DNA of 64,000 bases from the sequence record ON568341.1. One strand, 5' to 3'. Under the pieces are notes generated by a model. It saw only the letters and a list, made by a program, of their open reading frames with translations. It was not told where the DNA came from and did not search any database. Shown piece by piece: positions 855-15,715 of the stretch. Position numbers and translations under genes: made by a program. Position 1 is the stretch's first letter; the number at the start of each line of letters is the position of its first letter.

Positions 855-875
855 CAATTAAAGTACTGAATCACT

Positions 876-902
876 AGCCCACTTCTTATAGTGGGCTTTT
901 TT
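876..902 (+). terminator. Rho-independent terminator
   Basis: AGCCCACT...AGTGGGCT followed by a T-run. Confidence 0.85.
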
Positions 903-1129
903 GTGTTTATCGTTTACCAGTCCACTAGCACCGCCTAGAATCGATTCTAACGCATTAAACTGATTATCTGATGAATAGCCCTAGCTGGTGGCGTTAATGC
1001 CGTTAGAAAGCGATTGAGGACGTTTAAAGTATTTTGCAAAAAGTAATAAAAAGTACTTGCACGATTAAGAGATTAGAGTATAATTAATTACATCAAGACA
1101 AGACACCTTAACTAACTGAGGATATAAAG

Positions 1130-1282
1130 ATGAATACTTATGAACTGGATTGTTTCACTTTACAAGTAATGTCAGTATGCAGTAAAAAAGATTGGTCATC
1201 AAAGGAATTTAAAGCAGTTATTGCGTGTGCAAAACACGGCAAGACTATCAATGAAACGGCATCAATCATTGATAAACTTTAA
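1130..1282 (+). CDS. Hypothetical protein (50 aa, not in the ORF track)
   Basis: Promoter at 1057, SD GAGGA, MNTYELDCF...IDKL*. Confidence 0.7.
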   Translation: MNTYELDCFTLQVMSVCSKKDWSSKEFKAVIACAKHGKTINETASIIDKL

Positions 1283-1354
1283 AAAATAGTTTGACAATAG
1301 TTTTAAGTACTGCGATAATACATACATCAACTACTGAATAGGAATAAAAAAACA

Positions 1355-1582
1355 ATGGCTATCATCATTACTTACGTATCTGGTACTACTGGCACTGCTT
1401 CAACTGTTGCTGTAATTACTAATAAGAAAGGAGCGGAATTACATTTTGCAATGGATAATTGGGCCGTGAAGGAGTTCGGACCGTGGGCAAGTGTAGCATA
1501 CATTGAAACCTATCAAGTGCCATCGATTAGCTTAACTGATTTAGGTGTAGATCGAATCTTATGCCTGGATGAATTAATTTAA
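1355..1582 (+). CDS. Hypothetical protein
   Basis: Own promoter and SD. Confidence 0.75.
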   Translation: MAIIITYVSGTTGTASTVAVITNKKGAELHFAMDNWAVKEFGPWASVAYIETYQVPSISLTDLGVDRILCLDELI

Positions 1583-1668
1583 AAAAGTACTTGCAAAGTA
1601 AATCGAATAAAGTATAATACATTACATCAAGGGGAGAAAATGGTTCTCCCCACTAAGAGGAAACTAAT

Positions 1669-1812
1669 ATGAAAACTTGTCAATGTGGTAAAAAATCTAT
1701 TACTGGTTTGAAACGGGGCGTTGCACTTTGCCAGTACCATTATAATTTACAAGTATGGGGTAAAGAATGGGCCGATCAAGTGGAAGCAATTAAGAAAGCA
1801 AAAAGTAAGTAA
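1669..1812 (+). CDS. Small Cys/His-rich protein, possible Zn ribbon (47 aa)
   Basis: Promoter, hairpin leader and SD GAGG; CQC...CQYH. Confidence 0.7.
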   Translation: MKTCQCGKKSITGLKRGVALCQYHYNLQVWGKEWADQVEAIKKAKSK

Positions 1813-1893
1813 AAATATTATCACAGTACTATTGACATAGATTGATAGTACTGGCATAATAGATTTTATCAAGACAACTAAGAGGAAATTAAA

Positions 1894-2238
1894 ATGGCTA
1901 ACATCAATACTATAGCAGCACAAAATATTAACCTGTCTTCTGTTGAAGTTGTACACATTGCCGCCCGGCGTTGGTTCCAGGCGTCTTATGGTAATACTTA
2001 TTTCTCTTTAACGGTAGATGTTGAAATCAATGGCGAATTTATTGAAGTAGTAAACGTGCCGTTCCAATATGGCTACGGGGATCATTTTGACACTGTAGCA
2101 ATGGAAGAATTTAGCAAGGTTATTAATATGGAAGGTAAAGAGTTTTTACGCGGTTCTTATCTTTCCCGTTTTTGCCGTGATAATAATATTACTGTTTATA
2201 GTTCTGTTAGTGATGTTAAACGCAAAAAAGATCTTTAA
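1894..2238 (+). CDS. Hypothetical protein, paralogue of 7732-8055
   Basis: Shared GNTY.S, YGYG and DVKRKKD motifs. Confidence 0.8.
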   Translation: MANINTIAAQNINLSSVEVVHIAARRWFQASYGNTYFSLTVDVEINGEFIEVVNVPFQYGYGDHFDTVAMEEFSKVINMEGKEFLRGSYLSRFCRDNNITVYSSVSDVKRKKDL

Positions 2239-2318
2239 TTAGCTTTACTTTATGCAGATACTTTGATATAGTGTCTGCATAGGGGAAAGAAATTAAATCA
2301 ACTTAAGAGGATAGTAAA

Positions 2319-2588
2319 ATGAAAAATATCAGTACTTTAATCGATGCAGGCACACATGTTCGTCGGTCTATGGTTGCAACCAGTTCTACAAAACAAGTAG
2401 CGAGCGGTTATCTTGTATTTGTGCACGATGGAAAACTCCTGGAACGTTCAATCAATTTTGATGTTAAAAACAATTGCCGTTTTATTATCTTTAAGCGTGA
2501 GCAATATAAAATTGATTTACCAGCAAAGCCCATTAGTGGGGCGTACAACGTGCAATCATTGTTTGAGCGTCAACCATACACCTATTAA
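2319..2588 (+). CDS. Hypothetical protein
   Basis: Promoter at 2244, SD GAGGA. Confidence 0.75.
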   Translation: MKNISTLIDAGTHVRRSMVATSSTKQVASGYLVFVHDGKLLERSINFDVKNNCRFIIFKREQYKIDLPAKPISGAYNVQSLFERQPYTY

Positions 2589-2639
2589 TCAAAACAACGT
2601 TAGCGGTCGATTTAGGCCGCTTATACTGGGGATTATATA

Positions 2640-2810
2640 ATGAATACTAATCAAGTACTGAACGAGATTGAAAGCATCATTAAACCGATGAAGCGTACTG
2701 ATGCAATGTTAACACCGGAAGAATGCCGCTTATATGAGCGTTACAGCGTCGAACAAGTCCAGGCAATGGCCCGTATCCGTCCGGTTGCCAGTACTGATAA
2801 GGCGGCGTAA
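2640..2810 (+). CDS. Hypothetical protein (56 aa, not in the track)
   Basis: SD GGGGA, MNTNQVLNE...DKAA*. Confidence 0.6.
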   Translation: MNTNQVLNEIESIIKPMKRTDAMLTPEECRLYERYSVEQVQAMARIRPVASTDKAA

Positions 2811-2811
2811 T

Positions 2812-3021
2812 ATGCTTACTGTACAGGATAAGATCGACATCTTAAAGGTTAATATGTATGTGATTGATGCCGTACCTGGTAAAGTATTTGCATACGATGA
2901 CACCACTGTAAGCAATTTCTACTATAGCCAGGACGTGGGGGATCTTTCTGTACAGTCGGTTATTGAAAATGTAGTTAATGCAGCGTATGAGCATTTACTT
3001 TCAAATAGTACTTGCAATTAG
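2812..3021 (+). CDS. Hypothetical protein
   Basis: ATG immediately follows the upstream stop; start corrected from 2734. Confidence 0.65.
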   Translation: MLTVQDKIDILKVNMYVIDAVPGKVFAYDDTTVSNFYYSQDVGDLSVQSVIENVVNAAYEHLLSNSTCN

Positions 3022-3090
3022 TTTTCAGTACTGTATAATGTTTTACATGAAGGGGAGAAATAGTACTCCCCACTAATTAAGGAATATGAA

Positions 3091-3237
3091 ATGAAAGCAT
3101 CAAAAAAGAGTAATACTAAGAAAGCATGTTCACCTTTCGCTGGGGTATTCCCTTTACGTTTCGTTGATGAAGTGGTTTCCTACCCGCCGGGCCTTACTCC
3201 TGAGATGGTAGAAAGTTTGCGTAAATCTAAAAAATAA
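3091..3237 (+). CDS. Hypothetical basic protein (48 aa)
   Basis: Promoter at 3012, hairpin leader, SD AAGGA. Confidence 0.65.
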   Translation: MKASKKSNTKKACSPFAGVFPLRFVDEVVSYPPGLTPEMVESLRKSKK

Positions 3238-3318
3238 TACTTGCAATTAGTTTTTAGTACTGTATAATGTTTTACATGAAGGGGAGAAATGATTCTCCCC
3301 AAGAACAGGAGAAACAAA

Positions 3319-3471
3319 ATGAAACAATACAACGCTCGGTTTGATGTTACTATCGGCAACGGCAAAGGTCAATTCTCTTTCAGTACTCGTAAGAGTTATA
3401 CAGAAAACTTCTTGCGTAATTGTGCACTGACCGCCGCACAAATTAAACATTATTTTCAGGCTAAAAAATGA
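3319..3471 (+). CDS. Hypothetical protein
   Basis: Promoter at 3241, SD AGGAG; start corrected. Confidence 0.7.
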   Translation: MKQYNARFDVTIGNGKGQFSFSTRKSYTENFLRNCALTAAQIKHYFQAKK

Positions 3472-3557
3472 AATCATTAGCTTATTATAGTTCGGCCCTG
3501 GTCGGTGCATTGATCGCGGCATTGTTAGTAGCTTATCTATTCTTTATGGTGATTTAA

Positions 3558-3695
3558 ATGAATCCTAACGGTATAATTTACAGTACTCCTAAAACGAAAG
3601 CAGATAAAGCTAAAGCACGTAAAGCGAAAGTAAAGGAATACATCAAGCAAGGCATGACACGAAAGGCGGCGATTCTAAAAGCTAAAAATAAATGA
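3558..3695 (+). CDS. Very basic small protein (45 aa)
   Basis: MNPNGIIYSTPKTKADKAKARKAK...; SD GGTGA. Confidence 0.55.
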   Translation: MNPNGIIYSTPKTKADKAKARKAKVKEYIKQGMTRKAAILKAKNK

Positions 3696-3800
3696 AAAAA
3701 GTGGTTGACTTCGGTCAGCCATTTTGCTATTATATAATCATTGAGAGATAGCTCACTAGCCCACGGGGTGCGGGAGTGTATCTATTATATAAGCATTGAG
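3695..3800 (+). ncRNA. Terminator/promoter/small-RNA cassette, copy 1
   Basis: Hairpin containing TTGACT-17-TATTAT, then an ORF-less stem-loop with a TAGCCCACGGGGTGC core. Confidence 0.5.
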
Positions 3801-3916
3801 TACTGAAAACTATTTTAAAAGTATTTGCAGAAAGTACTTGCAAACTATCTCAATTGGCGTATAATGTTTTACATCGCAAGGGGAAACGGTTTCCCCTAGT
3901 AATAAGGAATAAAATC

Positions 3917-4258
3917 ATGACTATTGCAATTGTACAATCTAACTTTGAAAATGAAATCATCGCCCAAGCACTGCGTTTAAATGATGGTCGGGCCGAAATT
4001 AATTACGGTTTCAATTCAGGCGGTTGTGAAAAATATCAGTACTTTATAACTGCTGATGGCGGTGTCCTGGGTATTAATACAGTTATTGTAAACATTCAGA
4101 AAATTAATTTCAATGATCCAGACGATAGCCAGTTTTACATTATAGGCGTAGACGTGAACTATGAGGATGACTCACTAACTGATGATTACACTGGCGAGAA
4201 GTTAGAAAGTGCATACGGTGAAGATGATTATCAGTCAGTACCAGAAGATTTCGAATAA
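3917..4258 (+). CDS. Acidic hypothetical protein
   Basis: Promoter at 3838, SD AAGGA; start corrected. Confidence 0.75.
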   Translation: MTIAIVQSNFENEIIAQALRLNDGRAEINYGFNSGGCEKYQYFITADGGVLGINTVIVNIQKINFNDPDDSQFYIIGVDVNYEDDSLTDDYTGEKLESAYGEDDYQSVPEDFE

Positions 4259-4358
4259 TATTAAAAAATAGTTTGACAATAGATTATAGTACTGTATAAT
4301 AGTTTACATCAAGAAACGGGAAGTAACAGTACTTCCCTACTAACAGAGAGAAAACAAA

Positions 4359-4571
4359 ATGGCTGATATCCGCACTTTACTGAAAAATGCAAAACGAGTT
4401 TTATTTTCTGATCACGAACATTTAAACAAGGATATTACTGGCGTTCGGAATATCAAAGATGTAAAACGTGTTATGGGTATCTATTGCAATATGAAACGTG
4501 TTGGCACGTTCGGTAATAAATTTCTATACCAGGCGGGGGATTACAATTTTACACTGACTATCATTAACTAA
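4359..4571 (+). CDS. Hypothetical protein
   Basis: Own promoter, leader hairpin and SD. Confidence 0.75.
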   Translation: MADIRTLLKNAKRVLFSDHEHLNKDITGVRNIKDVKRVMGIYCNMKRVGTFGNKFLYQAGDYNFTLTIIN

Positions 4572-4653
4572 AAATATTATCACAGTACTATTGACATAGT
4601 TTGATAGTACTGGCATAATAGATTTTATCAACTACACTACTAAGGAATTAAAA

Positions 4654-4833
4654 ATGGCTATCATCGCAAAAACTGAAATCATCGGCCTGGATTCTATCAT
4701 CATGACGTTTGAAGATCAAAAAGGTATGTATGTAGTTTCCTATGGTGATTATGTTCGGGAGTATGAAACAGTAGACGAAGCCTTTGAAAGTTACATTCGC
4801 CAGGTGAATAAAGCATACGACGATTACCGCTAA
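4654..4833 (+). CDS. Hypothetical protein (59 aa, not in the track)
   Basis: Promoter at 4591, SD AAGGA. Confidence 0.7.
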   Translation: MAIIAKTEIIGLDSIIMTFEDQKGMYVVSYGDYVREYETVDEAFESYIRQVNKAYDDYR

Positions 4834-4946
4834 AATATATTACCAGTACTATTAAAGATATTGACAACGTTTGATAGTACTGGCATAATAAGTTTTATAA
4901 ACAGTAGTCAAATAGTAGTTAACTTAACAAAAGAGAGAGAAACAAA

Positions 4947-5090
4947 ATGATCGCACTGGATTCATTCATCGATGCAGTTCTGGCAAAAACTGGCGAGGAT
5001 CTGACCGCAGAACAATACGCAATGATCGAGCAATGCCAGCAAGACGGTAAATCGGTGAAAGATACTGTTAAGATTATCCGCAAGATGTAA
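4947..5090 (+). CDS. Hypothetical protein (47 aa, not in the track)
   Basis: Promoter at 4861, AG-rich SD, terminator downstream. Confidence 0.7.
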   Translation: MIALDSFIDAVLAKTGEDLTAEQYAMIEQCQQDGKSVKDTVKIIRKM

Positions 5091-5096
5091 GATTAT

Positions 5097-5125
5097 AAGC
5101 CCATTAGTTAACGCTGGTGGGCTTT
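5097..5125 (+). terminator. Terminator hairpin containing a Chi site
   Basis: AAGCCCA...TGGGCTT with GCTGGTGG at 5113. Confidence 0.7.
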
Positions 5126-5196
5126 AATCATTTACCCTATACAATGCCAGTACTAAACCGTTTATCTCATTAGAATGCATTACAGGACGTTTAACA

Positions 5197-5394
5197 ATGA
5201 TTAGCATGAAATCAGTACAAAAACAAATAGAAACATTATCAAAAATTAAACGTAAACAGTACTCATTAGAATATAATATCAATGGTAACTATCATCTAAT
5301 GAAAGAGAATAATTTTATCGTCATTGATGAATCATTGCAAATTATTAGTATAGTACTGAAAGCATTAATTAATGATAGAAAAAGGTTAAAATAA
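5197..5394 (+). CDS. Hypothetical protein
   Basis: SD AGGA; coupled to the next gene. Confidence 0.6.
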   Translation: MISMKSVQKQIETLSKIKRKQYSLEYNINGNYHLMKENNFIVIDESLQIISIVLKALINDRKRLK

Positions 5395-5651
5395 TGGCAG
5401 TAGGATTCGCGAAAGATGGAGCCGAGCAAGATGAGATTAACGCAGTTATTCAAGCCGCCGTTAACCACGCTAGAAAGCAAATTAACGCACAAATAGAATC
5501 ACTGATACATTGCCTCGACTGCGGCGATAAAATCCCTGAGAATCGCCGACAGGCTGTTAAGGGATGTAAGTACTGCATTAATTGCCAAGTGGATCATGAT
5601 AGTACTTTTAAAAGAGATCCGCGTAATTGTTGGCATAGATCTATGAGATAA
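5394..5651 (+). CDS. TraR/DksA-family C4 zinc-finger protein (YbiI-like)
   Basis: MAVGFAKDGAEQDEI N-terminus and CLDCGDKIPENRRQAVKGCKYCINCQ zinc finger. Confidence 0.9.
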   Translation: MAVGFAKDGAEQDEINAVIQAAVNHARKQINAQIESLIHCLDCGDKIPENRRQAVKGCKYCINCQVDHDSTFKRDPRNCWHRSMR

Positions 5652-5715
5652 AAAGTAATTGACAGTACTGAAAGATAGTGTATAATGTTTTATATCTTAA
5701 CTGAGGATAGAAATC

Positions 5716-6072
5716 ATGGGAATACAACATATCACGCGGACCACTGACAATGGCGAGATCACTGGTTATCAAGTACAGGGCAAAGTAGCACAATTGCAGT
5801 ACTGGTTTGTTAAACGTGGAATCATTGCACCGGATCTTGATTATGACCGTGTAGCGTTTATTGATTCTCTTTATGTTGATCCTGATAGTCGGGGCAATGG
5901 TGAAGGTAACGAATTAATGAATGCCTTTATCGATGCCGCCGATGATTCAGATTGTATCATCTTAGAATGCGATACGGGAGAAGATAACGCCTTTAATCTT
6001 AAAGAATGGTACGAAGGATTCGGATTCGAGGTACTGATCGATAGTGAATATCCTATCATGATTTTATCATAG
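5716..6072 (+). CDS. GNAT-family acetyltransferase
   Basis: IDSLYVDPDSRGNGEGNELM (motif A) and WYEGFGF (motif B). Confidence 0.85.
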   Translation: MGIQHITRTTDNGEITGYQVQGKVAQLQYWFVKRGIIAPDLDYDRVAFIDSLYVDPDSRGNGEGNELMNAFIDAADDSDCIILECDTGEDNAFNLKEWYEGFGFEVLIDSEYPIMILS

Positions 6073-6150
6073 TACTTGCATTTAGTTTTCAGTACTGTTA
6101 TAGTACTTGCATCAAGGGGAAACATCTTCCCCTACTAAGAGGAAATAAAA

Positions 6151-6339
6151 ATGGAAAACTTATCAAGTATTTTAGTACAAGATGATTTCGGTAATCCTGG
6201 AAGTGCTATCATTGTTCGGGGCAATAAAGCAACGTTTGTTATTGCTGGTGGACCCGTACAGCGTAGCATTAAAAATAATGCTGTTACCATTAATAATGTA
6301 CGCTATCGCTTAGATAAAGAATTAATTCATAAACTGTAA
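6151..6339 (+). CDS. Hypothetical protein
   Basis: Own promoter, hairpin and SD. Confidence 0.75.
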   Translation: MENLSSILVQDDFGNPGSAIIVRGNKATFVIAGGPVQRSIKNNAVTINNVRYRLDKELIHKL

Positions 6340-6424
6340 AAAAGTACTGGACAATAGATTATAGTACTGTATAATAGTTTACATGAAGGGGAGAAATGAT
6401 TCTCCCCACTAAGAGGAAAGAAAA

Positions 6425-6637
6425 ATGCAAGGTCAACTAATCGTTCGTAAATGGTCTGATACTAACGAAAAACCGTGGGATGTACAATACATCGCCCCAA
6501 ATGGTGAATCCAGATATCAACCAGGTGTAACGCATAGTACTGAGCAATTCGCCGCCGCTCATCGCGAACGTCTGTTACAATCAATGCAGCACGGTTCCGG
6601 TGAAAAATTCATTCAGGATCATTGGCTGAAAGATTAA
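6425..6637 (+). CDS. Hypothetical protein
   Basis: Own promoter, hairpin and SD. Confidence 0.75.
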   Translation: MQGQLIVRKWSDTNEKPWDVQYIAPNGESRYQPGVTHSTEQFAAAHRERLLQSMQHGSGEKFIQDHWLKD

Positions 6638-6723
6638 AAAGTACTTGCACAGTACTGAATAAAGTGTATAATGTTTTATATCGGAAGGGGAATAGTTCCC
6701 CTCCTAACAAAGAGGAAAGTATA

Positions 6724-6897
6724 ATGGTCCAGGTAGAATTAACAGTACTGAAAGATCTGTTTTATCGGATTGGTACTACTGGCGAATATCCGAAGGGTGA
6801 TAATGCAAAACTTTACGTATCACTCGACTTATGGCAACGCGAACAATTAGCAACGGCCTGGCGTAAAGGCAAAGCAGATAGCGAGGTGAAAGCATGA
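6724..6897 (+). CDS. Hypothetical protein
   Basis: Promoter at 6645, SD GAGGA; start corrected. Confidence 0.7.
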   Translation: MVQVELTVLKDLFYRIGTTGEYPKGDNAKLYVSLDLWQREQLATAWRKGKADSEVKA

Positions 6898-7043
6898 AAG
6901 AATTCTTATTTGAAGTAGTGTTTCAAGGTGTCGGTAATAACCAACTGATTCGAACAAGTGGTTATAATGTTAACCAGGCATGGAATAACATTAAACAAAT
7001 GTACCCGAACGCTATCACATATCGCAACCCGAAAGAAGTTTAA
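6894..7043 (+). CDS. Hypothetical protein (49 aa, not in the track)
   Basis: ATGA overlap, SD GAGGTG. Confidence 0.65.
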   Translation: MKEFLFEVVFQGVGNNQLIRTSGYNVNQAWNNIKQMYPNAITYRNPKEV

Positions 7044-7052
7044 AAATAATTG

Positions 7053-7155
7053 AAAAAGGGATTGACTCCGGTCAGTCCCTTTGCTATTATATACGCATAG
7101 AAACAAATTAGCCCACCGGGTGCATAAATGTATCTATTGTTTGCTGGTGGCTAGT
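7053..7155 (+). ncRNA. Terminator/promoter/small-RNA cassette, copy 2 (with Chi)
   Basis: AAAGGGATTGAC-TCCG-GTCAGTCCCTTT, TAGCCCACCGGGTGC core, Chi at 7143. Confidence 0.5.
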
Positions 7156-7368
7156 ACTATCAAGTACTGAAAACTATTTTTAAAAAAGTACTTGCAAAGT
7201 ATCACGATAAGCGTATAATGTTTTACATCAGGACGGGGAACGAAATAAGTAACCCCGTTAAGTAGTCCAGGAGTAAGACATACGAAAAACTCCCCTGATA
7301 AAATAGTTTGACAATAGAAAGTAAACGAGTATAATACTTACATCAACCACTGATAAGGAAACATTAAA

Positions 7369-7644
7369 ATGCGGACTTTACTTACAGCTAACGAAATCGA
7401 GCAAGTACTGACTACTAATCTGGAACAATGGAAACGTGAAGCAGATATCCAGGCGGTTCAATGCCTTAACGATAAGTTAACGCCAGATGACTTAAGCACG
7501 ATTGTTGATCCACAATTTTATGAAGATATTCACGACACGTCTTTAAGCGTCGAGGATGTACTTGATAAGCACTACATTGATACTGATTTACATGTTTACG
7601 GTCGTAAAAACTTTATCACTATTCACGACATTTACAATACTTAA
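7369..7644 (+). CDS. Hypothetical protein
   Basis: Promoter at 7308, SD AAGGA. Confidence 0.75.
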   Translation: MRTLLTANEIEQVLTTNLEQWKREADIQAVQCLNDKLTPDDLSTIVDPQFYEDIHDTSLSVEDVLDKHYIDTDLHVYGRKNFITIHDIYNT

Positions 7645-7731
7645 GTATTGACAAAGTATCTTAGTACTGTATAATAGTTTACATCAAGCGAGGGGAATGG
7701 TTCCCCTCCTAACAAAGAGAGAGAAATAAAA

Positions 7732-8055
7732 ATGGCTATGATCCTTACCCAGAAAGTAGAACTGAAAATTGTAACCTCCTTTGACATTAAAGTTAATCGG
7801 TGGACTGATAGCCACGGCAATACTTACCACTCCTGCTACGTGTCCGCATTGATTGGTGATCGCTGGGAAGACCTGGGACACGAAACCTTTACATACGGTT
7901 ACGGCACACAAGGCGAGTACACGGGTTTAGAAATCATTAAGGAAACTGTAATAGGTTTCAACCCGAAAGAGAAAGTACTACACAGAATTGAGAAAGAGAT
8001 CAACAAAGAAATTACAGTTCGCTACTACGATGTAAAACGTAAGAAAGACATGTAA
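7732..8055 (+). CDS. Hypothetical protein, paralogue of 1894-2238
   Basis: GNTYHS, YGYG and DVKRKKDM motifs. Confidence 0.8.
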   Translation: MAMILTQKVELKIVTSFDIKVNRWTDSHGNTYHSCYVSALIGDRWEDLGHETFTYGYGTQGEYTGLEIIKETVIGFNPKEKVLHRIEKEINKEITVRYYDVKRKKDM

Positions 8056-8150
8056 TAGAATCCATTTAAAGTACTATTTGACATTGCCCAGATAGTACTT
8101 TATAATAGACTCTAACTTGTAGTACTAACTCAACTAATAGGATGTATACC

Positions 8151-8546
8151 ATGATTACTAAATTCTACGCTACCCGTGAAGCTGCCCGTATTGTTGCACG
8201 CGAGGAAGGAGCAGCATTTAAAGACATGGGCAAAGATGCAACGAAAGGTCAACGCTGGGCCGTACAGTTCAAAGAAATCTCTGATATTGTGAATTCACCT
8301 GAGCCAGTACTGACAGCAGCAGAACTAAAACGAGCGGATATGCTGGCGGCAATACTTGACGCACAAGATGAGTTTATCGCTGACTCTGATATCAAAGTAC
8401 AGGTAAACCACACCGCATGGACTCACGCGGATCACCTGGCAAACCTTAAGCGTCCAAGTGAACTGATTCGCAACCAGAAAGAGATCCGACATGATCGTAA
8501 GGGTAATCGTGTAACAGTATACAGTAAACGCCGCCAGGTTATCTAA
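8151..8546 (+). CDS. Hypothetical protein
   Basis: Promoter at 8078, SD AGGA, terminator downstream. Confidence 0.75.
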   Translation: MITKFYATREAARIVAREEGAAFKDMGKDATKGQRWAVQFKEISDIVNSPEPVLTAAELKRADMLAAILDAQDEFIADSDIKVQVNHTAWTHADHLANLKRPSELIRNQKEIRHDRKGNRVTVYSKRRQVI

Positions 8547-8568
8547 TAACTTGCAGTACTAACAACAC

Positions 8569-8593
8569 GGCGGGATCAGTTCCCGCCTTTTTT
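8569..8593 (+). terminator. Rho-independent terminator
   Basis: GGCGGGA...TCCCGCC followed by T6. Confidence 0.85.
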
Positions 8594-8607
8594 ATAGGAC
8601 AAACAAA

Positions 8608-8862
8608 ATGATTAAGGTTCAACTATATAAAGATAACATCTTACGGGTACACTATAAAGCACCTCAGAGAATCATCACAAAGGCCGTACAGCTTGCTAAT
8701 GAGTTTATTAATGGTAACCTATTACCTAGGAAGTTAAGCAACGGAAAACTGCGTGTAATCGACGTGGACACTAACAACAGGATAGTAATCGAGAACACAG
8801 GAAAAATAAACCTATATGAACACCAACAATACAATAAGAAAATAAAACTAATATCACGTTGA
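8608..8862 (+). CDS. Hypothetical protein
   Basis: SD AGGA. Confidence 0.65.
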   Translation: MIKVQLYKDNILRVHYKAPQRIITKAVQLANEFINGNLLPRKLSNGKLRVIDVDTNNRIVIENTGKINLYEHQQYNKKIKLISR

Positions 8863-9194
8863 CAGTACTCAAATGTTTTAGTATTATGTACACATACCAA
8901 CACGGGAGAAACAAAATGAAATTATCTAAAATCGAAAAGAAAACTATTGATGAAGCAGTTAAGCACGGTTATACCTTTCGTAATGATTCACATTTTACCA
9001 ATTTTCAACAGGGGTATCGTACTATTAAAAAACTAATTGACAAAGGTTTATTAGTTGAAGTCAATAATGGGAACGGTATCGAGTATCAGCCAACCCAAGA
9101 CGCATTATCTTTAAAGAAATATAATATTATCTAATTGACAGTACTCAAATGTTTTAGTACTATATGTACATACCAACACGGGGGAAACAAAATG
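8859..9194 (+). repeat. Duplicated ~60-bp promoter/RBS cassette (8859-8918 and 9135-9194)
   Basis: TTGACAGTACTCAAATGTTTTAGTA...CATACCAACACGGG.GAAACAAAATGA in both copies. Confidence 0.9.
8916..9134 (+). CDS. Hypothetical protein
   Basis: Start corrected; the track start lies inside the promoter. Confidence 0.75.
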   Translation: MKLSKIEKKTIDEAVKHGYTFRNDSHFTNFQQGYRTIKKLIDKGLLVEVNNGNGIEYQPTQDALSLKKYNII

Positions 9195-9434
9195 ATTACT
9201 TTAGAAAAACGTATCAAAGAAACTACATCGCTGGTGGAACTGTTAACAGTACTCAAATGTAAAACAACACCATTTAGCACGCCGGACTTTATTAATATGG
9301 TTGATGTTAATGGTCGCTATCGTATCACGGTCGAACAAGGAGCGGCGAAAGTATTCAGTACTAAAAACACGAAGGAAGTGATCCACGCCGTTAATGTTAA
9401 AAAAGTAGTTGCCATTGATAGTAAAGTACTGTAA
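9192..9434 (+). CDS. Hypothetical protein
   Basis: Start corrected; the track start lies inside the promoter. Confidence 0.75.
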   Translation: MITLEKRIKETTSLVELLTVLKCKTTPFSTPDFINMVDVNGRYRITVEQGAAKVFSTKNTKEVIHAVNVKKVVAIDSKVL

Positions 9435-9465
9435 TATAGTTTCATTAACTCAAGGAGAACATGCA

Positions 9466-10050
9466 ATGCGTAATTATACTAAATTCATCCGTACACTGTC
9501 AGAAATGGAAACCAACAAAGAGATCCTTTCAGCTTGTCGGTTAGCTGGCCTGGAGATCATCGGTGCTGGTTCTTCCCGTATAGTTTTCGCTTTAAATGAT
9601 CGGTTAGTGATTAAGGTCGCGAATTGTGATGCGGGTGTAGAACAAAATGAAACTGAATGTAAGGTATGGAATTTTTTAGACTATGACCGCCCTCAGTTGA
9701 AACAGTACTTTGCAAAGGTGCATATGCATTTATGCGATCCTGATAATATGTTTATCGTTATGGATCGGTTGAGTACTGCAAGCAAAGGTAGTGTGAAGCA
9801 CGTAAACGCGTGCAATGAATTAAAGTACAATATTAAACGTAATGCAATCGAACGCCATCACCGCTTTGCTGATGCACTACAACACGTCGATGATACATTA
9901 TCAACACTAACGATAAGAGATATCAGAAAACAGAATATCGGCCAGGATCGTAATGGCCTTATTAAAGTACTTGATTACGGTTTAACCTGCAATATCTGGA
10001 ATCAGTACTATAAAAAGCGTGATGTGGCAGCAAGTAAGGTAACACGATAA
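9466..10050 (+). CDS. Protein kinase-like (Ser/Thr kinase fold)
   Basis: Gly loop GAGSSR, VIK lysine, helix-C QNETE, catalytic loop RDIRKQNIG, DYG metal-binding motif; SD AAGGAG. Confidence 0.8.
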   Translation: MRNYTKFIRTLSEMETNKEILSACRLAGLEIIGAGSSRIVFALNDRLVIKVANCDAGVEQNETECKVWNFLDYDRPQLKQYFAKVHMHLCDPDNMFIVMDRLSTASKGSVKHVNACNELKYNIKRNAIERHHRFADALQHVDDTLSTLTIRDIRKQNIGQDRNGLIKVLDYGLTCNIWNQYYKKRDVAASKVTR

Positions 10051-10060
10051 AAAAGATTAA

Positions 10061-10165
10061 AAAAGGGATTGACTCCGGTCAGTCCCTTTGCTATTATATA
10101 TCCATTGAGAGATAACTCACTGACCCATAGGGTGCGGAAGTGTATCTATTATATAAGTATTCAGT
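10061..10165 (+). ncRNA. Terminator/promoter/small-RNA cassette, copy 3
   Basis: Same hairpin as copies 2 and 4; TGACCCATAGGGTGC core; body resembles copy 1. Confidence 0.5.
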
Positions 10166-10274
10166 ACTGAAAACTATTTTTAAAAAAGTACTTGCAAACT
10201 ATCTCAATGAGCGTATAATGTTTTATATCGAGAGGGGGAAATGGTTCTCCCTAGTACTAAAAGGAATCAAGACG

Positions 10275-10496
10275 ATGACTACTATGACCTGCGTTCACGC
10301 TTCAAATCTTCTGAATGATGCAGCATTTAAAGCAGGTGAAGAATATCAATGCTATCGGGATGAAAATAAAAAAGTTTTTGTAGTTGATAATAATGGTTTC
10401 CATATTGAATTACAATCCGGCTTCACTGGTTTAAATGGTAAATCAGTATGGGGCGTACAGGATGATAAAGGTACATATCATTTTAAACGTAATTAA
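10275..10496 (+). CDS. Hypothetical protein
   Basis: Promoter at 10192, SD AAGGA; start corrected. Confidence 0.75.
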   Translation: MTTMTCVHASNLLNDAAFKAGEEYQCYRDENKKVFVVDNNGFHIELQSGFTGLNGKSVWGVQDDKGTYHFKRN

Positions 10497-10577
10497 GTAT
10501 TGACAAAGTATATCAGTACTGTATAATAGTTTACATCAAGGGGAGAATGGTTCTCCCCACTAAAAGGAAACAAAATT

Positions 10578-10850
10578 ATGTCCAGCTACTCCGCTACTAT
10601 GATCATTAAAGATATGAACGGTAATCCTACTTCTGCTGGTGGATCATTTGGAAACATTAATTTAGATGGTCGGTTATCCATGCAATCAGCCATCGATGCA
10701 GCGAAAGAAGTTTTTAAGAATGAATGTACTGTTAGTAAGCTGGATTATATGGGTTTCGCTATCGAGAAAACTACTCGTTTTGTGAACTACAAAAATCCAC
10801 TGATGATTGATACTAACCTGAAAGCTAACGAAGTGGGGTACTTATTATGA
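10578..10850 (+). CDS. Hypothetical protein
   Basis: Own promoter, hairpin and SD. Confidence 0.75.
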   Translation: MSSYSATMIIKDMNGNPTSAGGSFGNINLDGRLSMQSAIDAAKEVFKNECTVSKLDYMGFAIEKTTRFVNYKNPLMIDTNLKANEVGYLL

Positions 10851-11038
10851 CAGTAGAAGAAGTAAAAAAAGTACTGGCAGTACTACGATATCATAATCAT
10901 TGCAAGGTGAAGAATGATCCTGATTATCTTGATTCATCCCTGGAGGAAGACACCTTGAACGCTATAAGCCATATGCAGACATTAGCAAAGCGTATGACTG
11001 AAAAGAACATGCCGGACTATATCGGAAATAAAATTTAA
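10847..11038 (+). CDS. Hypothetical protein
   Basis: ATGA overlap. Confidence 0.7.
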   Translation: MTVEEVKKVLAVLRYHNHCKVKNDPDYLDSSLEEDTLNAISHMQTLAKRMTEKNMPDYIGNKI

Positions 11039-11124
11039 AAAGTACTTGCATTGTAGTTAGATTAACGTATAATGTTTTATATCGAGAGGGGAAATGGTTT
11101 CCCCTCAAGTCCAGGAGATACACC

Positions 11125-11388
11125 ATGAACACTATCGAAATCACTATCAATGCACACGTATACGACAACGTAGTACTGCAAACTACTATGACCGCCAATG
11201 ATACCAGTACTTTGCGGAATACTGTTATTAGTGCTGTATGTGCCGCTATCGGTGATGTATCCCTGGAAAATTCAGAACACATCAACAACGGTTTCACTAT
11301 GTGCAAACGTGATAACGCAAAACATATCATCGTGGAAGGTTACGGCGGTGTAGAATTTAATGTTTATATGAAAAAAGTACTTGCATAA
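11125..11388 (+). CDS. Hypothetical protein
   Basis: Own promoter, hairpin and SD AGGAG. Confidence 0.75.
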   Translation: MNTIEITINAHVYDNVVLQTTMTANDTSTLRNTVISAVCAAIGDVSLENSEHINNGFTMCKRDNAKHIIVEGYGGVEFNVYMKKVLA

Positions 11389-11455
11389 TAACTAAAACAA
11401 AGTATAATGTTTTGCATAGGGGGAGATATCCTCCCCCACTAAAAGGAGTAATAAA

Positions 11456-11680
11456 ATGGCTAACTTTGATGAACTGATGCGGGAAGTAGCTTACCTGGCA
11501 GAAGAGAAGAAATCATTCGATTCTATCTATAACACCGCTCACCGTGATTCAGTACTGGCATGTAACCAGGATCAAAAAGATGAACTAATCGCCACCTATC
11601 ATGAAGCATGGAAGTACTACCGACAATGGGAGAAAGAAGAAAGTGAGTCTACCATTGACGGCCTCAATAATCTAATCTAA
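11456..11680 (+). CDS. Hypothetical protein
   Basis: Own promoter, hairpin and SD. Confidence 0.75.
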   Translation: MANFDELMREVAYLAEEKKSFDSIYNTAHRDSVLACNQDQKDELIATYHEAWKYYRQWEKEESESTIDGLNNLI

Positions 11681-11756
11681 AAGTTTTATTTCAGTACTAT
11701 TGACATAGCTTGATAGTACTGATGTAATAACTTTACTAACTACAAGGGGAAACATA

Positions 11757-12014
11757 ATGGATCAATTCACACAATATCGGGTAAATCCTCAAGCTATGGC
11801 CTACGTAGAAGACCATAAAACGTTACCAGTACTGCAACCAGTTAAAGGCCGTATCTATCGTGGCCTTGCCTGGGATACGGCCCAGGATGGATATAAAACC
11901 GTCGCCGTGGGTATGTATTGCGGTGATGGTGAATGGTTTGATCCAAATAATCCGGTATCCATTGACAGTACTGAAAAAATGAAATGGGCCGACTACATCG
12001 AAGATATTTCATAA
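11757..12014 (+). CDS. Hypothetical protein
   Basis: Promoter-like cassette and SD. Confidence 0.75.
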   Translation: MDQFTQYRVNPQAMAYVEDHKTLPVLQPVKGRIYRGLAWDTAQDGYKTVAVGMYCGDGEWFDPNNPVSIDSTEKMKWADYIEDIS

Positions 12015-12104
12015 AAACTATTTGACAGTACTAACCAGTAATGTATAATGTTTTACATAGAGCGGGGGAATAGTTCTCCCGCCAATAGTTTGGAGTAAAA
12101 CATT

Positions 12105-12305
12105 ATGTCTATCGCTATCGCCCTGGTTGAAGTACTGAAAGAAGCTAAAGCCAACCTTATCGACGTAAAGATCCAGGAACTACAAAACGGCTTAATCGGC
12201 TGTACTTGTACCGCTGGTGGAGCGGCAGACTATCGAGAACACGAATCACTCGAATCACTGGTTCGGTATCTTACCATGATCGTTGATGATTGGAGAATCA
12301 TCTAA
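12105..12305 (+). CDS. Hypothetical protein
   Basis: Own promoter, hairpin and SD. Confidence 0.75.
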   Translation: MSIAIALVEVLKEAKANLIDVKIQELQNGLIGCTCTAGGAADYREHESLESLVRYLTMIVDDWRII

Positions 12306-12320
12306 CAAAAAAGAATAAAA

Positions 12321-12450
12321 AAAGGGATTGACTCCGGTCAGTCCCTTTGCTATTATATACGCATAGACAAAAACTAGCCCACAGGGTGCATAGGTGTATC
12401 CAAAATATATAGTTAATAACGGTGAGTAACTATCTGCTGGTGGAACTAAA
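12321..12450 (+). ncRNA. Terminator/promoter/small-RNA cassette, copy 4 (with Chi)
   Basis: Same hairpin; TAGCCCACAGGGTGC core; Chi at 12436. Confidence 0.5.
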
Positions 12451-12550
12451 ACTATTAATAAAAAAGTATTGACAAAGTATATCAGTACTGCAATAATGTA
12501 TCTCGTAGGGCGGCAATGGTGCGACGGCCCACAAAGTTAGGAGATTCACC

Positions 12551-12883
12551 ATGAGTACTTCAATCGCTATCGTTAAAGCTTTCATCCGTACTAATGTTTC
12601 CTCTGTATTCATCGACGGCCTCGACCGTAACGTAGAATACTCAATCATTATCGCACAAACGGCAAACGGTTCTCGGTACATCCTGAATGATAGTGAAGCA
12701 AATCACTACTACTTCACTAAAGCCACTGGCTTTAAACGCATCGATGCTGATGTAGTATACGCTAAGATGAATAAGCTGGTAGACAAGATTAACGCGAAAG
12801 GTACTATCGATTTACAGTACTGGACCGAAACCGATCCAGAATATGGATCTCACCGCTACCTGAATCCAGGTATCAAAATGTAA
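12551..12883 (+). CDS. Hypothetical protein
   Basis: Own promoter, hairpin and SD AGGAG. Confidence 0.75.
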   Translation: MSTSIAIVKAFIRTNVSSVFIDGLDRNVEYSIIIAQTANGSRYILNDSEANHYYFTKATGFKRIDADVVYAKMNKLVDKINAKGTIDLQYWTETDPEYGSHRYLNPGIKM

Positions 12884-12972
12884 AAAGTACTTGCATAGTA
12901 CTTAGATTCATGTATAATGTTTTACATAGAGAGGGGGAAATGGTTCTCCCTCCTAAATTAAGGAGTTTTATC

Positions 12973-13374
12973 ATGACCTTCTCAATCACTTCCTTCGCTG
13001 ACGTTTTAGTACTGGCCCGGACTTTTGGTAAAGCTGGCCTTGAGCACGCTGTAAGTAATGGTCATATGCACCCTGAATATTGCCGCATCATCGGTAGCTG
13101 CAAACGTTGGGCCGTGTCCCGTAACATTGAGATTGAAAACTTCAATGACGGCAACAACGAATATACAGTTGATGCAGTATTCGAAGCCGTTGATCTCGGC
13201 GGTATCTATAACACTAACCTGAATGATGTGCGTATCGTTCGCACGGGGTTCGGTGCTTATGATGTATCTATCCGTGAAGCTATGGACAAGGGATACATTA
13301 GCAAGGACCAGTTAGCTTACATCATGCAGCAAACTAAGGAACGTAACGAAGCACGTACTATCTTAGGGTTGTAA
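12973..13374 (+). CDS. Hypothetical protein
   Basis: Promoter at 12891, SD AAGGAG; start corrected. Confidence 0.75.
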   Translation: MTFSITSFADVLVLARTFGKAGLEHAVSNGHMHPEYCRIIGSCKRWAVSRNIEIENFNDGNNEYTVDAVFEAVDLGGIYNTNLNDVRIVRTGFGAYDVSIREAMDKGYISKDQLAYIMQQTKERNEARTILGL

Positions 13375-13398
13375 GCGTTACACATCACCAAACATCAT

Positions 13399-13420
13399 AG
13401 GCCGCCTTGTAGCGGCCTTA
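13399..13420 (+). terminator. Terminator-like hairpin
   Basis: AGGCCGC-cttgta-GCGGCCT. Confidence 0.6.
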
Positions 13421-13442
13421 ACTATATCAGGAGTTCATACAC

Positions 13443-13652
13443 ATGAACTATACAGTATACAGCGTTCTAGGCACTATTGCAGGCGTACATGATAACGTCG
13501 ATGGTGCTATGCGTACAGTACTGCAACAGGTTCCACTAAAGCCTAAGACCATTAAGCAGATGACAGCACGACTAACCAGGGCGACGGCTGGCGTGGAAGT
13601 ATGGCAGGACTATGGGGATACACAGATAATCGTAAGCGTAACGAAGGATTAA
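13443..13652 (+). CDS. Hypothetical protein
   Basis: SD AGGAG. Confidence 0.7.
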   Translation: MNYTVYSVLGTIAGVHDNVDGAMRTVLQQVPLKPKTIKQMTARLTRATAGVEVWQDYGDTQIIVSVTKD

Positions 13653-13676
13653 TGCGTAAAAGGATTTAGTACTGAT

Positions 13677-13749
13677 TCAGAAAAAAGTCAAGGCGTTTTT
13701 TAAATTATGCGTTAAAAAAATGCATAGGTAATCCCTTGACTTTTTTGAA
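13677..13749. repeat. 13-bp perfect inverted repeat at the early/middle boundary
   Basis: AAAAAAGTCAAGG (13681-13693) and CCTTGACTTTTTT (13734-13746). Confidence 0.7.
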
Positions 13750-13843
13750 ATAAAAGGGATTGGACTATGGCAAAATGCGTAGGGGGCTAAAGGGCGGGTA
13801 ACCTTAGCGACTTCGTTAAAGGGGTATTACGAATAAAATGTTA

Positions 13844-13871
13844 TTGACTTTTTATATAAATCGTATAAAAT
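13844..13871 (+). promoter_or_regulatory. sigma70 promoter driving the LGTNYQE array
   Basis: TTGACT-16-TAAAAT. Confidence 0.6.
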
Positions 13872-14099
13872 ATGATTGATAATAATTTTAAGGGAGTCCC
13901 TGTGCGTATTTTAACTCAAGCAGAACACCACGAAAGACTTATCAATAACATGGCTATGATAATGTATAAGTCCCATGACCGTGGTATTGCATATAAGCGT
14001 GAATTAGTACTGGAACTATTCATTGGGACTAACTATCAGGAAAGGTATGTCAACGATTGGATTTGGTATTTAATTGAAGATATAACGAGTAAACTATGA
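13872..14099 (+). CDS. LGTNYQE-family paralogue
   Basis: FIGTNYQE. Confidence 0.8.
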   Translation: MIDNNFKGVPVRILTQAEHHERLINNMAMIMYKSHDRGIAYKRELVLELFIGTNYQERYVNDWIWYLIEDITSKL

Positions 14100-14290
14100 T
14101 AATTTTAACTAAAGAAGAATATCAATCACTGTTACGTAAAAACTACGTAAAGATTTACAATACAGCCACACACGTAGAACGAATGGAGTTATACCTTTTG
14201 ATTACATTGGGAACTAACTATCAGGAAAGATGGGTGATTCAATATATGGATACATTGAAAAATAAAATATTGTCCACGAGGAAACAATGA
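14096..14290 (+). CDS. LGTNYQE-family paralogue
   Basis: TLGTNYQE. Confidence 0.8.
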   Translation: MIILTKEEYQSLLRKNYVKIYNTATHVERMELYLLITLGTNYQERWVIQYMDTLKNKILSTRKQ

Positions 14291-14496
14291 AAATCATAAC
14301 ACACAGACAAGCATTGAGTCGTATGGTGAAGTATCTTGAATTGATGGTGTCTATACCAAAGAGCTTACCAAAAACTGAAAGAGAGATACATTCAGCAGAG
14401 TATCGTCTATTAGCAGTACTGAATACTAACTACCAAGATGAATATGTTGACGATTGGATTCTATCATTAATAGAAGATATAAAGAGTAAACTATGA
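14287..14496 (+). CDS. LGTNYQE-family paralogue
   Basis: VLNTNYQD. Confidence 0.8.
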   Translation: MKIITHRQALSRMVKYLELMVSIPKSLPKTEREIHSAEYRLLAVLNTNYQDEYVDDWILSLIEDIKSKL

Positions 14497-14708
14497 ATAT
14501 CATTGCGAACTCACATCAATATACCGAACGCGTCGCTGCCAGACAACTTGAAATCCTCATAATATACGAAGAAACTTCTGATTTAAACTTAGCTGAGGTA
14601 TTGGAAAATGAAATACTTTTGGGTGCATTCTTGGGAACAGACTATCAGGAGTATTATGAGGAAAAGTATTTGTCATCTCTTGAGAAATACATCAGGAGTA
14701 AACAATGA
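14493..14708 (+). CDS. LGTNYQE-family paralogue
   Basis: FLGTDYQE. Confidence 0.8.
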   Translation: MNIIANSHQYTERVAARQLEILIIYEETSDLNLAEVLENEILLGAFLGTDYQEYYEEKYLSSLEKYIRSKQ

Positions 14709-14932
14709 AACATTTAAGTATAAGAGAGAAGAATAAAATTATCATCAATGTCATGAACCGATATAATCAACTATTGGATAGAGAATACTCAAGTTCATAT
14801 GTGCACAGGATAAACACTACGGATGTACGCATGATGGCTGTACTGGGGACAAACTATCAGGAAAGTTATGTTCATGAGCACATAGTTGCACTCACTAATT
14901 ACATAATGGACAAATGTAATGAACATCATTAA
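14705..14932 (+). CDS. LGTNYQE-family paralogue
   Basis: VLGTNYQE. Confidence 0.8.
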   Translation: MKHLSIREKNKIIINVMNRYNQLLDREYSSSYVHRINTTDVRMMAVLGTNYQESYVHEHIVALTNYIMDKCNEHH

Positions 14933-15143
14933 TAACTTTGAATACGAGGCCCGTGTTAAGAGTGCCAGAGAAAAAGAGAACACCATTTACTTCACTATGA
15001 TGTACTTACAATGGACTGAAATTGAAGAAAAGGTTGCTGAAGTATGGATGTTGGAATTCATGGGGACGCAGTATCAGAATATGTTTGCGGGTGAGTATAT
15101 CAATGTTCTTATGAAACAAATAGAAAGGAAGGAAAAGAACTAA
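14919..15143 (+). CDS. LGTNYQE-family paralogue
   Basis: FMGTQYQN. Confidence 0.8.
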   Translation: MNIINNFEYEARVKSAREKENTIYFTMMYLQWTEIEEKVAEVWMLEFMGTQYQNMFAGEYINVLMKQIERKEKN

Positions 15144-15232
15144 TGGAGGGATGCTGTACTTTATTTGAACTTTTATATATTCATGAACACATAGTTGCCC
15201 TCACAAATCTAATAAAGGATAAATGTAAATGA
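15143..15232 (+). pseudogene. Truncated LGTNYQE-family remnant (29 aa)
   Basis: HEHIVALTNLIKDKCK matches the C-terminus of 14705-14932 (HEHIVALTNYIMDKCN); the motif half is missing. Confidence 0.6.
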
Positions 15233-15486
15233 AACACTTGACTGATGATGAACATGAAACTATAATTCGTAAACTAACCCCCATCACAAGGATAGTATAC
15301 GGTGATCCCAGCCTTACATGGAACCAAATGCAAGCTAAAGTTAATGAGCTATGGTTGCTGTACTTTATGGGGACTCAATATCAAGATAAGTTTTGCACAG
15401 AATATATCGAACAATTAACGAATGTTATACAGGATAAACTAAATGAACGAATTGTGGAAAAATATGAAAACTTTATCAAGCATTGA
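15229..15486 (+). CDS. LGTNYQE-family paralogue
   Basis: FMGTQYQD. Confidence 0.8.
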   Translation: MKHLTDDEHETIIRKLTPITRIVYGDPSLTWNQMQAKVNELWLLYFMGTQYQDKFCTEYIEQLTNVIQDKLNERIVEKYENFIKH

Positions 15487-15715
15487 GTATCAGACTGCCC
15501 TCTTCTCTCTTCTAAATACCCTCCGCACGAACAATAAACTTTATAATTCCCGTGAAGCTGATATTGTCAACGCTGATGTATATCTTAATAAATTCATTGG
15601 GACTAACTATCAAGAACTGTTTGTTTTACGATATATCTCTGCACTAAGAAACGAAATATCAGATAAAACCCGACAAGCCAGAAGAGAATGGAAGAAACAA
15701 TGCGACACAGACTAA
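15464..15715 (+). CDS. LGTNYQE-family paralogue
   Basis: FIGTNYQE. Confidence 0.8.
   Translation: MKTLSSIEYQTALFSLLNTLRTNNKLYNSREADIVNADVYLNKFIGTNYQELFVLRYISALRNEISDKTRQARREWKKQCDTD

Follow-up and report, generated by a model that had tools for sequence, protein, structure and literature searches.

A conserved promoter-coupled RNA element predicted in the terminal-repeat-type early region of RaK2-like jumbo phages

Small hairpin RNAs located right after early promoters are familiar from the put sites of HK022 and the nut sites of lambdoid phages, in which a variable stem is combined with a conserved loop or conserved flanks; each operon has one such site, which acts on terminators further downstream. 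In T4-type phages, PeSL elements are defined as a repeated sigma-70-like early promoter together with an AT-rich upstream stretch and a stable stem-loop (PMC2839356, PMC4122927). Further PeSL traits are enrichment where small orphan genes turn over, indel breakpoints of related phages at the cassettes, and circular DNAs arising when cassettes recombine. RNA anti-CRISPRs (Racr) are short phage non-coding RNAs with a strong promoter of their own, which mimic the host CRISPR repeat and titrate a protein (PMC10651486). In the Pseudomonas jumbo phage PA5oct, ncRNA001 and ncRNA002 (236 and 451 nt) lie in the terminal repeat and were seen by RNA-seq to be highly transcribed (PMC7318152). Here we analyse a stretch of 64,000 nucleotides from sequence record ON568341.1 (the window), which carries four copies of a cassette composed of a terminator-like hairpin that contains a promoter, followed by a transcribed, structured element that we call E.

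On comparative evidence, the transcribed half of this cassette is a conserved and previously undescribed RNA family of about 50 nt that is coupled to a promoter. With one cassette as the query, blastn gave matches in 76 phage records. Identity was 86-100% in Asteriusvirus; beyond this genus it was 68-78% and restricted to the hairpin, the promoter and the first 50-60 transcribed bases, with matches in the Klebsiella phages RaK2 and K64-1, Cronobacter GAP32, Pectobacterium CBB, Serratia BF and Erwinia, Yersinia and Salmonella jumbo phages. Between genera, E was the only stretch of the cassette recovered by blastn, its copies sharing 70-75% identity amid flanking DNA that could not be aligned. 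A simple pattern search of the fetched early regions returned 5-9 copies per locus, with an evident covarying hairpin right after the promoter. Because MAFFT was unable to keep this hairpin (P1) in register across genera, the covariance model was seeded from an ungapped subset, comprising 11 Eneladusvirus copies, and was rebuilt from 72 hits as model R2. This model gave 103 cleanly separated hits in 94 distinct rows, the share of the window being four. Statistics on structure refer to the 94 distinct sequences, and counts of promoters, strands and terminators to 99 E copies in 14 loci (among them UE-S1, L001, and fEgEco12, L039).

All RaK2-like jumbo phages examined carried 10-20 copies of E per genome, the carriers comprising Asterius-, Alcyoneus-, Mimas- and Eneladusvirus and metagenomic relatives. 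A TTGAC-N17-extended -10 promoter was present at a fixed distance upstream of 99/99 copies, and across the family the orientation of E relative to its promoter was strict. The copies were confined to a block of about 20 kb, which corresponds to the direct terminal repeat wherever the repeat has been mapped. In CBB they occupy 987-20,929, entirely within the annotated 22,456-bp repeat, and the corresponding spans are 3.8-23.6 kb in GAP32, 1-18.7 kb in BF and 0.3-15.8 kb in fHe-Yen9-03. Experimental mapping places the direct terminal repeat of fEgEco12 at 1-20,993 (PMC13070987); this genome has 11 copies at 1.1-19.6 kb and none in 21-24 kb. The window itself is 99.5% identical to UE-S1 (an Escherichia phage of Asteriusvirus, 358 kb) and 90-97% identical to other Asteriusvirus genomes. 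Positions 5698-23307 of fEgEco12 are collinear with window positions 1-16000, and from this homology to a mapped repeat the first ~13.8 kb of the window are taken as a terminal-repeat-type early region. By the same homology all four cassettes lie inside it, among genes that are all small and hypothetical.

Searches beyond these phages returned only noise or chance matches. No Rfam 15 family reached its gathering score anywhere in the window, and relaxing the threshold for one cassette brought up nothing but noise (E-values of 4-6). An origin of E in the host, or mimicry of a host sequence, found no support: a pattern scan of 185,579 species-representative bacterial genomes produced five chance matches, none passing the model; among viral contigs, 15-mer matches in small ones were likewise due to chance and failed the model, and all true matches came from contigs of 108-378 kb. 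No E was found in the first 26 kb of PA5oct, the non-coding RNAs defined there by RNA-seq included (best match 12 bits, E-value 0.5). A blastn comparison of E with 5,426 complete E. coli genomes gave no match, at a sensitivity where only near-perfect matches of repeat length are detectable in 28 Gb. No paper describing E was found in a literature search. The cassettes were also considered as possible tRNA or tmRNA genes, and ARAGORN found a single tRNA, far from any of them. That gene, an 85-nt tRNA-Cys with anticodon ACA at window 30070-30154, is unusual in both length and anticodon and may be a different or aberrant tRNA.

The consensus of E consists of the 5'-terminal hairpin P1, a YUAR linker, a second hairpin (P2), the bases GC, about six variable nucleotides and a GUAUCUAU tail. 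P1 has 4-5 bp and a purine-rich loop of the GNGAAA/AGAUAA type. It was paired in 93.8% of cells, with double changes at all four pairs, 3-5 Watson-Crick types at each and at least 12 different stems among the homologues. Its covariation score was 0.444 compared to 0.144 in shuffles (0/500 reached 0.444), and at most 0.058 when the partners were slid; the same signal came from an ungapped MAFFT alignment that had been made without fitting to a structure. P2 (R-CCC, a loop of 3-4 nt, GGG-U) was 100% paired and near-invariant, its closing pair being A-U in 53 rows and G-U in 41, with a C-G to U-A exchange in two sequences. The first two alignment columns were Y-A in 94/94 distinct rows. Since this invariant dinucleotide lies at the expected start-site distance from the -10 element, the RNA is predicted to begin 1-3 nt before P1.

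This structure differs from the one in the initial annotation, which had placed outer stems (AGATA/TATCT and CACT/AGTG) around a CCCA/GGGT stem with a 2-nt loop. Across the 94 homologues the outer stems were paired in 59.7% of cells, against 58.1% in shuffles, and CCCA and GGGT are not reverse-complementary; the actual hairpin is formed by R-CCC and GGG-U around a 3-nt loop. The covariation that it had named as a check was strong, but was found in P1, a different stem from that proposed. Its broader view of the non-coding stretch as a structured RNA was supported by a conserved, multicopy and promoter-coupled element in a region of the earliest type.

Two further pairings were tried and rejected. 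A third hairpin after P2 scored like shuffles in both registers, and in a pseudoknot between the P1 loop and the tail the two partners failed to change together (about 20 copies, compared by eye). Within the variable stretch after P2 (alignment columns 44-50), many copies contain either GATC, as part of GGAGATCC or GGAGATCT, or GGAG. These phages encode a Dam-type methyltransferase (CBB_72, GAP32_068).

The count of four cassettes in the window, put forward in the initial annotation, was reproduced by a string search, a core search and model R2. The 28-nt hairpin string has three exact occurrences and a fourth when stem bases are left free, with 0 expected from shuffles; four instances of the core RCCCAnnGGGTGC compare with 0.22 expected; and model R2 matched the 64 kb exactly four times (45-63 bits, E-values at most 3e-9; Table 1). 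The promoter and terminator scans likewise recovered, at all four sites, the hairpin with its complete TTGACT-17-TATTAT promoter and TG extension, which has the sequence features of a sigma-70 extended -10 promoter. The hairpin folds at -15.9 kcal/mol (z = -4.4 against shuffles) and has 12 pairs, of which 4-5 are G-C, a stem ending in TTT and a GCTATTATAT tail. In each copy this combination of a G+C hairpin and a U-rich tract is that of a predicted intrinsic (Rho-independent) terminator, and on the opposite strand the A-run yields 5-6 U, making the hairpin terminator-like on both strands. The reported compensatory changes in copy 1 could be read directly from the sequence as two fully exchanged pairs relative to copies 2-4, in addition to one G-C to G-T change. 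The -35 hexamer of the first promoter sits within the 5' arm and loop of the hairpin. Flanked by an A-run upstream and a T-rich tail downstream, this GC-cored hairpin would end transcription of the upstream gene as well as any transcription arriving on the opposite strand. With a promoter, an AT-rich upstream stretch and a stable stem-loop, all repeated, the hairpin-plus-promoter half of the cassette is, by analogy, a PeSL-like composite of terminator and promoter.

The proposed division of the cassettes into two subtypes was borne out by their alignment. Copies 1 and 3 have P1; copies 2 and 4 are without it and carry instead a decayed inverted partner copy of E, which accounts for their extra spacer. 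The statement that the region holds no open reading frame (ORF) stands in that none is conserved, although mechanically called ORFs do overlap it. In the deposited annotation of UE-S1, the coding sequence UES1_266 (window 10140-10496) starts at a GTG inside E; the ATG at window 10275, which has a ribosome-binding site (RBS) and lies behind the second promoter and a hairpin in the 5' untranslated region (UTR), is a more plausible start. The short coding sequence g045 of fEgEco12 (16836-16955) similarly overlaps the end of the equivalent E copy (16799-16850).

Table 1. Features of the four cassettes in the window (positions are those of the window)
Feature	Position	Strand	Details
Cassette 1 hairpin	3698..3725	+	loop TTCG; directly after stop codon of upstream ORF; holds -35; z = -4.4
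Cassette 1 first promoter	3705..3733	+	TTGACT, 17-bp spacer, TG, TATTAT
Cassette 1 E	3739..3790	+	50.5 bits; predicted start at invariant A 3740; P1 UGAG/CUCA, linker CUAG, P2 GCCC-ACG-GGGU, GC, variable stretch, GUAUCUAU tail
Cassette 1 second promoter	3838..3865	+	TTGCAA-16-TATAAT, generic early type
Cassette 1 5'-UTR hairpin	3876..3900	+	generic early-gene module; then RBS and ATG 3917
Cassette 2 hairpin/terminator	7055..7082	+	contains -35
Cassette 2 first promoter	7062..7090	+	promoter scan
Cassette 2 E	7096..7142	+	46.1 bits; predicted start at invariant A 7097; without P1 stem; P2 and tail intact
Cassette 2 inverted-partner E remnant, decayed	7143..7154	+	complementary to P2 region of cassette 2; compare intact UE-S1 dyad L001:853-951
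Cassette 2 second promoter	7192..7219	+	then hairpin 7232-7259 and RBS-like AGGAG without ORF
Cassette 2 third promoter	7308-7335	+	precedes gene at 7369
Cassette 3 hairpin/terminator	10062..10089	+	contains -35
Cassette 3 first promoter	10069..10097	+	promoter scan
Cassette 3 E	10103..10154	+	63.4 bits; predicted start at invariant A 10104; P1 UGAG/CUCA; P2 ACCC-AUA-GGGU
Cassette 3 second promoter	10192..10219	+	5'-UTR hairpin 10233-10252; gene ATG 10275
Cassette 4 hairpin/terminator	12321..12348	+	contains -35
Cassette 4 first promoter	12328..12356	+	promoter scan
Cassette 4 E	12362..12408	+	45.5 bits; without P1; model match 12368-12408; predicted start CA 12362-12363, invariant A ~12363
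Cassette 4 inverted-partner E remnant, decayed	12430..12448	+	by analogy with dyads of relatives
Cassette 4 second promoter	12469..12497	+	TTGACA-17-AATAAT with TG; 5'-UTR hairpin ~12508-12530; gene ATG 12551

The distribution of E over the two DNA strands bears on its function. Gene-strand copies number 67 of the 99, and in 40 of these a hairpin encloses the -35. The remaining 32 are on the strand without genes, each with its own TTGACA-17-extended -10 promoter and none with a -35 hairpin. Seventeen pairs of facing promoter+E units form convergent dyads. In 11 of them exactly 7 nt separate the two units, and a transcript that reads through a dyad would form a ~50-bp hairpin (-59 kcal/mol, z = -10). 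Examples of dyads are L002:3797-3907, L003:6597-6707, L005:976-1103, L006:284-413, L031:3062-3189 and, in UE-S1, L001:853-951. Other dyads have gaps of 18-29 nt, several of which enclose an AT-rich, AATGAGAATCATT-type palindrome. UE-S1 has dyad or opposite-strand copies immediately upstream of the window sequence, at L001:853 (plus), 911 (minus) and 2828 (minus). Solo copies have a GC hairpin and U-run 16-25 nt downstream, usually a terminator shared with a converging gene, and are predicted to give discrete RNAs of 97-108 nt. Their layout, an own promoter and a Rho-independent terminator bounding a predicted RNA of 50-300 nt, is that of chaperone-dependent trans-acting small RNAs (for example L004:16222-16318, minus strand). 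A conserved downstream gene partner of E across genera was not found in a test that rests on six of eight query ORFs, those taken for the genes after copies 1 and 3 being discounted because of a wrong frame. Because one third of the copies lie on the gene-less strand, and many are terminated or in dyads, we argue that the product is the RNA itself.

The window copies are arranged differently. Each cassette is followed by a second promoter (4/4), as the initial annotation had described, and to it the first promoter had therefore appeared to serve only the short RNA. In none of the four cassettes, however, did the terminator scan detect a terminator in the interval from E to the second promoter or the gene. 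Read-through into the gene is therefore expected, continuing to the hairpin of the next cassette 2-3 kb further on, and since nothing terminates transcription between E and the next promoter and gene, E in the window is also a 5' leader. The independent small RNA that had been proposed is thus matched by the stand-alone, terminated opposite-strand units of relatives, but not by the copies in the window. That the RNA might be highly expressed, or might serve as a decoy, a sponge or an anti-defence factor, is a guess.

The second promoters are of a generic kind, and a generic early-gene module is found at nearly every small early gene between window positions 220 and 12500 (for example 1591-1660, 3241-3310, 6348-6420 and 10500-10570). 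This module consists of TTG(A/C)AA-16-TATAAT, gttttacatc, a GGGGAG..CTCCCC hairpin with an AAUGGUU-like loop, ACTAA, an RBS and an ATG. The CA, hairpin and CUAR that make up the 5' part of E are arranged as in this generic early leader, and the E-specific part, P2 and the tail, occupies the place of the RBS and ORF. Window 7220-7307 holds what appears to be a module whose gene has been lost: its complete generic promoter, 5'-UTR hairpin and RBS-like AGGAG lead to no ORF, and another promoter comes next; UE-S1 has a similar apparent arrangement at L001:1040-1180. The palindrome AGTACT occurs 213 times in window 1-64000 against 16.3 expected (largest shuffle 28) and is densest in 1-14000. It is located in promoter spacers, overlapping -35 hexamers, just after E and inside genes, and recurs near E in other genera; the excess may reflect a regulator site, a modification target or restriction-linked selection.

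Compared with fEgEco12, the window differs by four single-gene indels, at 5383-5395, 6339-6363, 7642-7738 and 10495-10590. At two of these the alignment ends overlap by about 95 bp, as expected from recombination between repeated promoter sequences, and a promoter+E+ORF module at fEgEco12 11150-11468 is absent from the window.

We favour a model in which the E RNA is itself the product, binding a protein and acting in trans, and assign this reading a probability of about 0.45. The covariation, the tolerance of G-U pairs, the strict orientation and the stand-alone, terminated opposite-strand units argue that E is selected as an RNA and is not tied to a particular gene. The scant variation of P2 and the tail suggests recognition of specific bases and hence a protein partner. 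Strong host-type promoters would make E in many copies once the terminal repeat becomes available for transcription. A transcript from the first promoter would start at the invariant Y-A and immediately yield E, in which P1 would mainly protect the 5' end and P2 with the tail would mark the binding site for a host or phage protein; E would then sequester or recruit this partner in trans. In relatives the module would be present as a discrete, terminated RNA of about 100 nt, and in the window E would head a read-through early mRNA, unless processing releases it. A more specific and less probable version is that E represents a new class of multicopy phage small RNAs, made from 10-20 strong host-type promoters at the onset of infection, that would bind and so neutralise or redirect a conserved enterobacterial protein, with the dyads supplying a second output in the form of a long hairpin or double-stranded RNA. 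As to the target, an RNA-binding regulator, a ribonuclease or a defence component would be our guess.

Several observations weigh against the favoured model. The near-invariance of P2 leaves its pairing barely tested by covariation, P1 is absent from two of the four window copies (2 and 4) and from several relatives, and the folding energies of single E sequences are unremarkable (z from -0.2 to -1.3). Because its 5' layout matches that of an ordinary early-mRNA leader, part of the E motif may be generic. Most gene-strand copies outside the window also have no terminator after E, and in the window, where none follows, a discrete small RNA is not predicted unless the transcript is processed. 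Finally, we infer the step to a protein-binding decoy from the pattern of conservation alone.

The main rival is a cis-acting 5' leader, which would stabilise the 5' end of its own transcript or make polymerase processive in a put- or nut-like manner, so that mRNA from the first promoter acquires properties different from those of second-promoter mRNA. Such a leader fits the window copies, and 67/99 copies overall are upstream of gene-strand genes with no terminator between, as are 4/4 in the window. The placement of P1 only 1-3 nt from the predicted 5' end resembles that of 5' stabiliser hairpins, the CA-hairpin-CUAR layout is shared with the generic early leader, and the promoter-proximal position is that of known antitermination RNAs. 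It does not fit the opposite-strand or terminated copies: one third of all copies point away from every gene, and solo copies run directly into a terminator. Moreover, a complete second promoter nearly always intervenes before the gene, which is thereby independent of E, no conserved partner was found among the six downstream ORFs compared, and 10-20 copies per 20 kb greatly exceed the need of known antitermination sites. We regard the leader as a serious but, on balance, unlikely explanation of the family. A trans-acting small RNA that works by base pairing, using the GUAUCUAU tail or the P1 loop as a chaperone-helped seed for host or phage mRNAs, would account for the classic layout of the solo copies (own promoter, 5' functional domain, AU-rich spacer, Rho-independent terminator) and for conserved stretches outside the helices. 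The window copies, however, have neither the terminator nor the U-tail, sites complementary to the tail motif are no more frequent on the window coding strand than chance allows (3 sites), and the strongest conservation is within helix P2, which would be unusual for a seed; this mode of action seems rather improbable.

It is also conceivable that E matters only as DNA, either as repeats homogenised by PeSL-type recombination or as operators of early promoters, its RNA having no function. The PeSL-like design of the hairpin-plus-promoter part, the single-gene indels of related phages with edges in repeated promoter sequence, the promoter+E+ORF module missing from the window, the short and palindrome-like P2 and the AT-rich palindromes at the centres of some dyads are all consistent with this. 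Neither protein-DNA recognition nor gene conversion explains the compensatory changes in P1 with its 12 or more stems, however, and tolerated G-U pairs and strict orientation relative to the promoter also speak against a DNA element. Identity of 70-75% across genera amid unalignable flanks indicates selection, not recent homogenisation, and we give a DNA-only role a low probability. Very improbable is a micro-peptide, for example from an NUG-UAU-CUA-stop frame overlapping the tail: although about half of the copies read (A/G)UG UAU CUA UA(A/G) after a GGAG-like string, the start-codon position in column 50 is not G in 42/94 rows (G 52, C 26, A 16), the spacing from GGAG to the start is 0-1 nt and no frame is conserved.

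RaK2-like jumbo phages of Escherichia, Klebsiella, Salmonella, Serratia, Yersinia, Erwinia, Pectobacterium and Cronobacter have been widely isolated for therapy and biocontrol. Their terminal repeats of about 20 kb have so far been annotated only as rows of hypothetical genes; the present results suggest that the repeat is organised by an apparently undescribed family of promoter-coupled RNA modules. The analysis supplies a covariance model and a consensus structure, and predicts start bases, two hairpins and, in relatives, terminated forms of about 100 nt. An abundant early RNA, if confirmed, would mean that host takeover by large lytic phages includes a layer of multicopy small RNA, and gene calls that start inside E would need correction. 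Should E act only as a leader, it would still account for how operons are punctuated, and genes exchanged as modules, in this region.

Comparison with the systems described above places the two halves of the cassette differently. Like PeSLs, the cassettes combine AT-rich sequence ahead of the -35 with a stable G/C-cored stem-loop predicted to stop transcription arriving from upstream. They also appear to resemble PeSLs in lying in a plastic region of small genes of unknown function, where relatives may differ by single cassette+ORF indels. Unlike in PeSLs, the -35 lies inside the hairpin, a second promoter follows, the family has copies in both orientations and as convergent dyads, and the deeply conserved transcribed motif E, which has not been described for PeSLs, is added; there is no sequence relationship, and the likeness is one of analogy. 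The non-coding RNAs of the distantly related PA5oct share with E a location in the long terminal repeat of a jumbo phage, but were annotated without known promoters and are not homologous by the E model. The put and nut sites are likewise promoter-proximal hairpin RNAs, whereas E has 10-20 copies, many of which point away from genes or run straight into a terminator. Racr and E each have their own promoter, predicted to be strong for E, and a small hairpin conserved in sequence as well as in shape. A low-sensitivity blastn against E. coli genomes gave no resemblance of E to CRISPR repeats. E differs in being multicopy, with 10-20 copies per genome, and in being conserved in phages of seven host genera.

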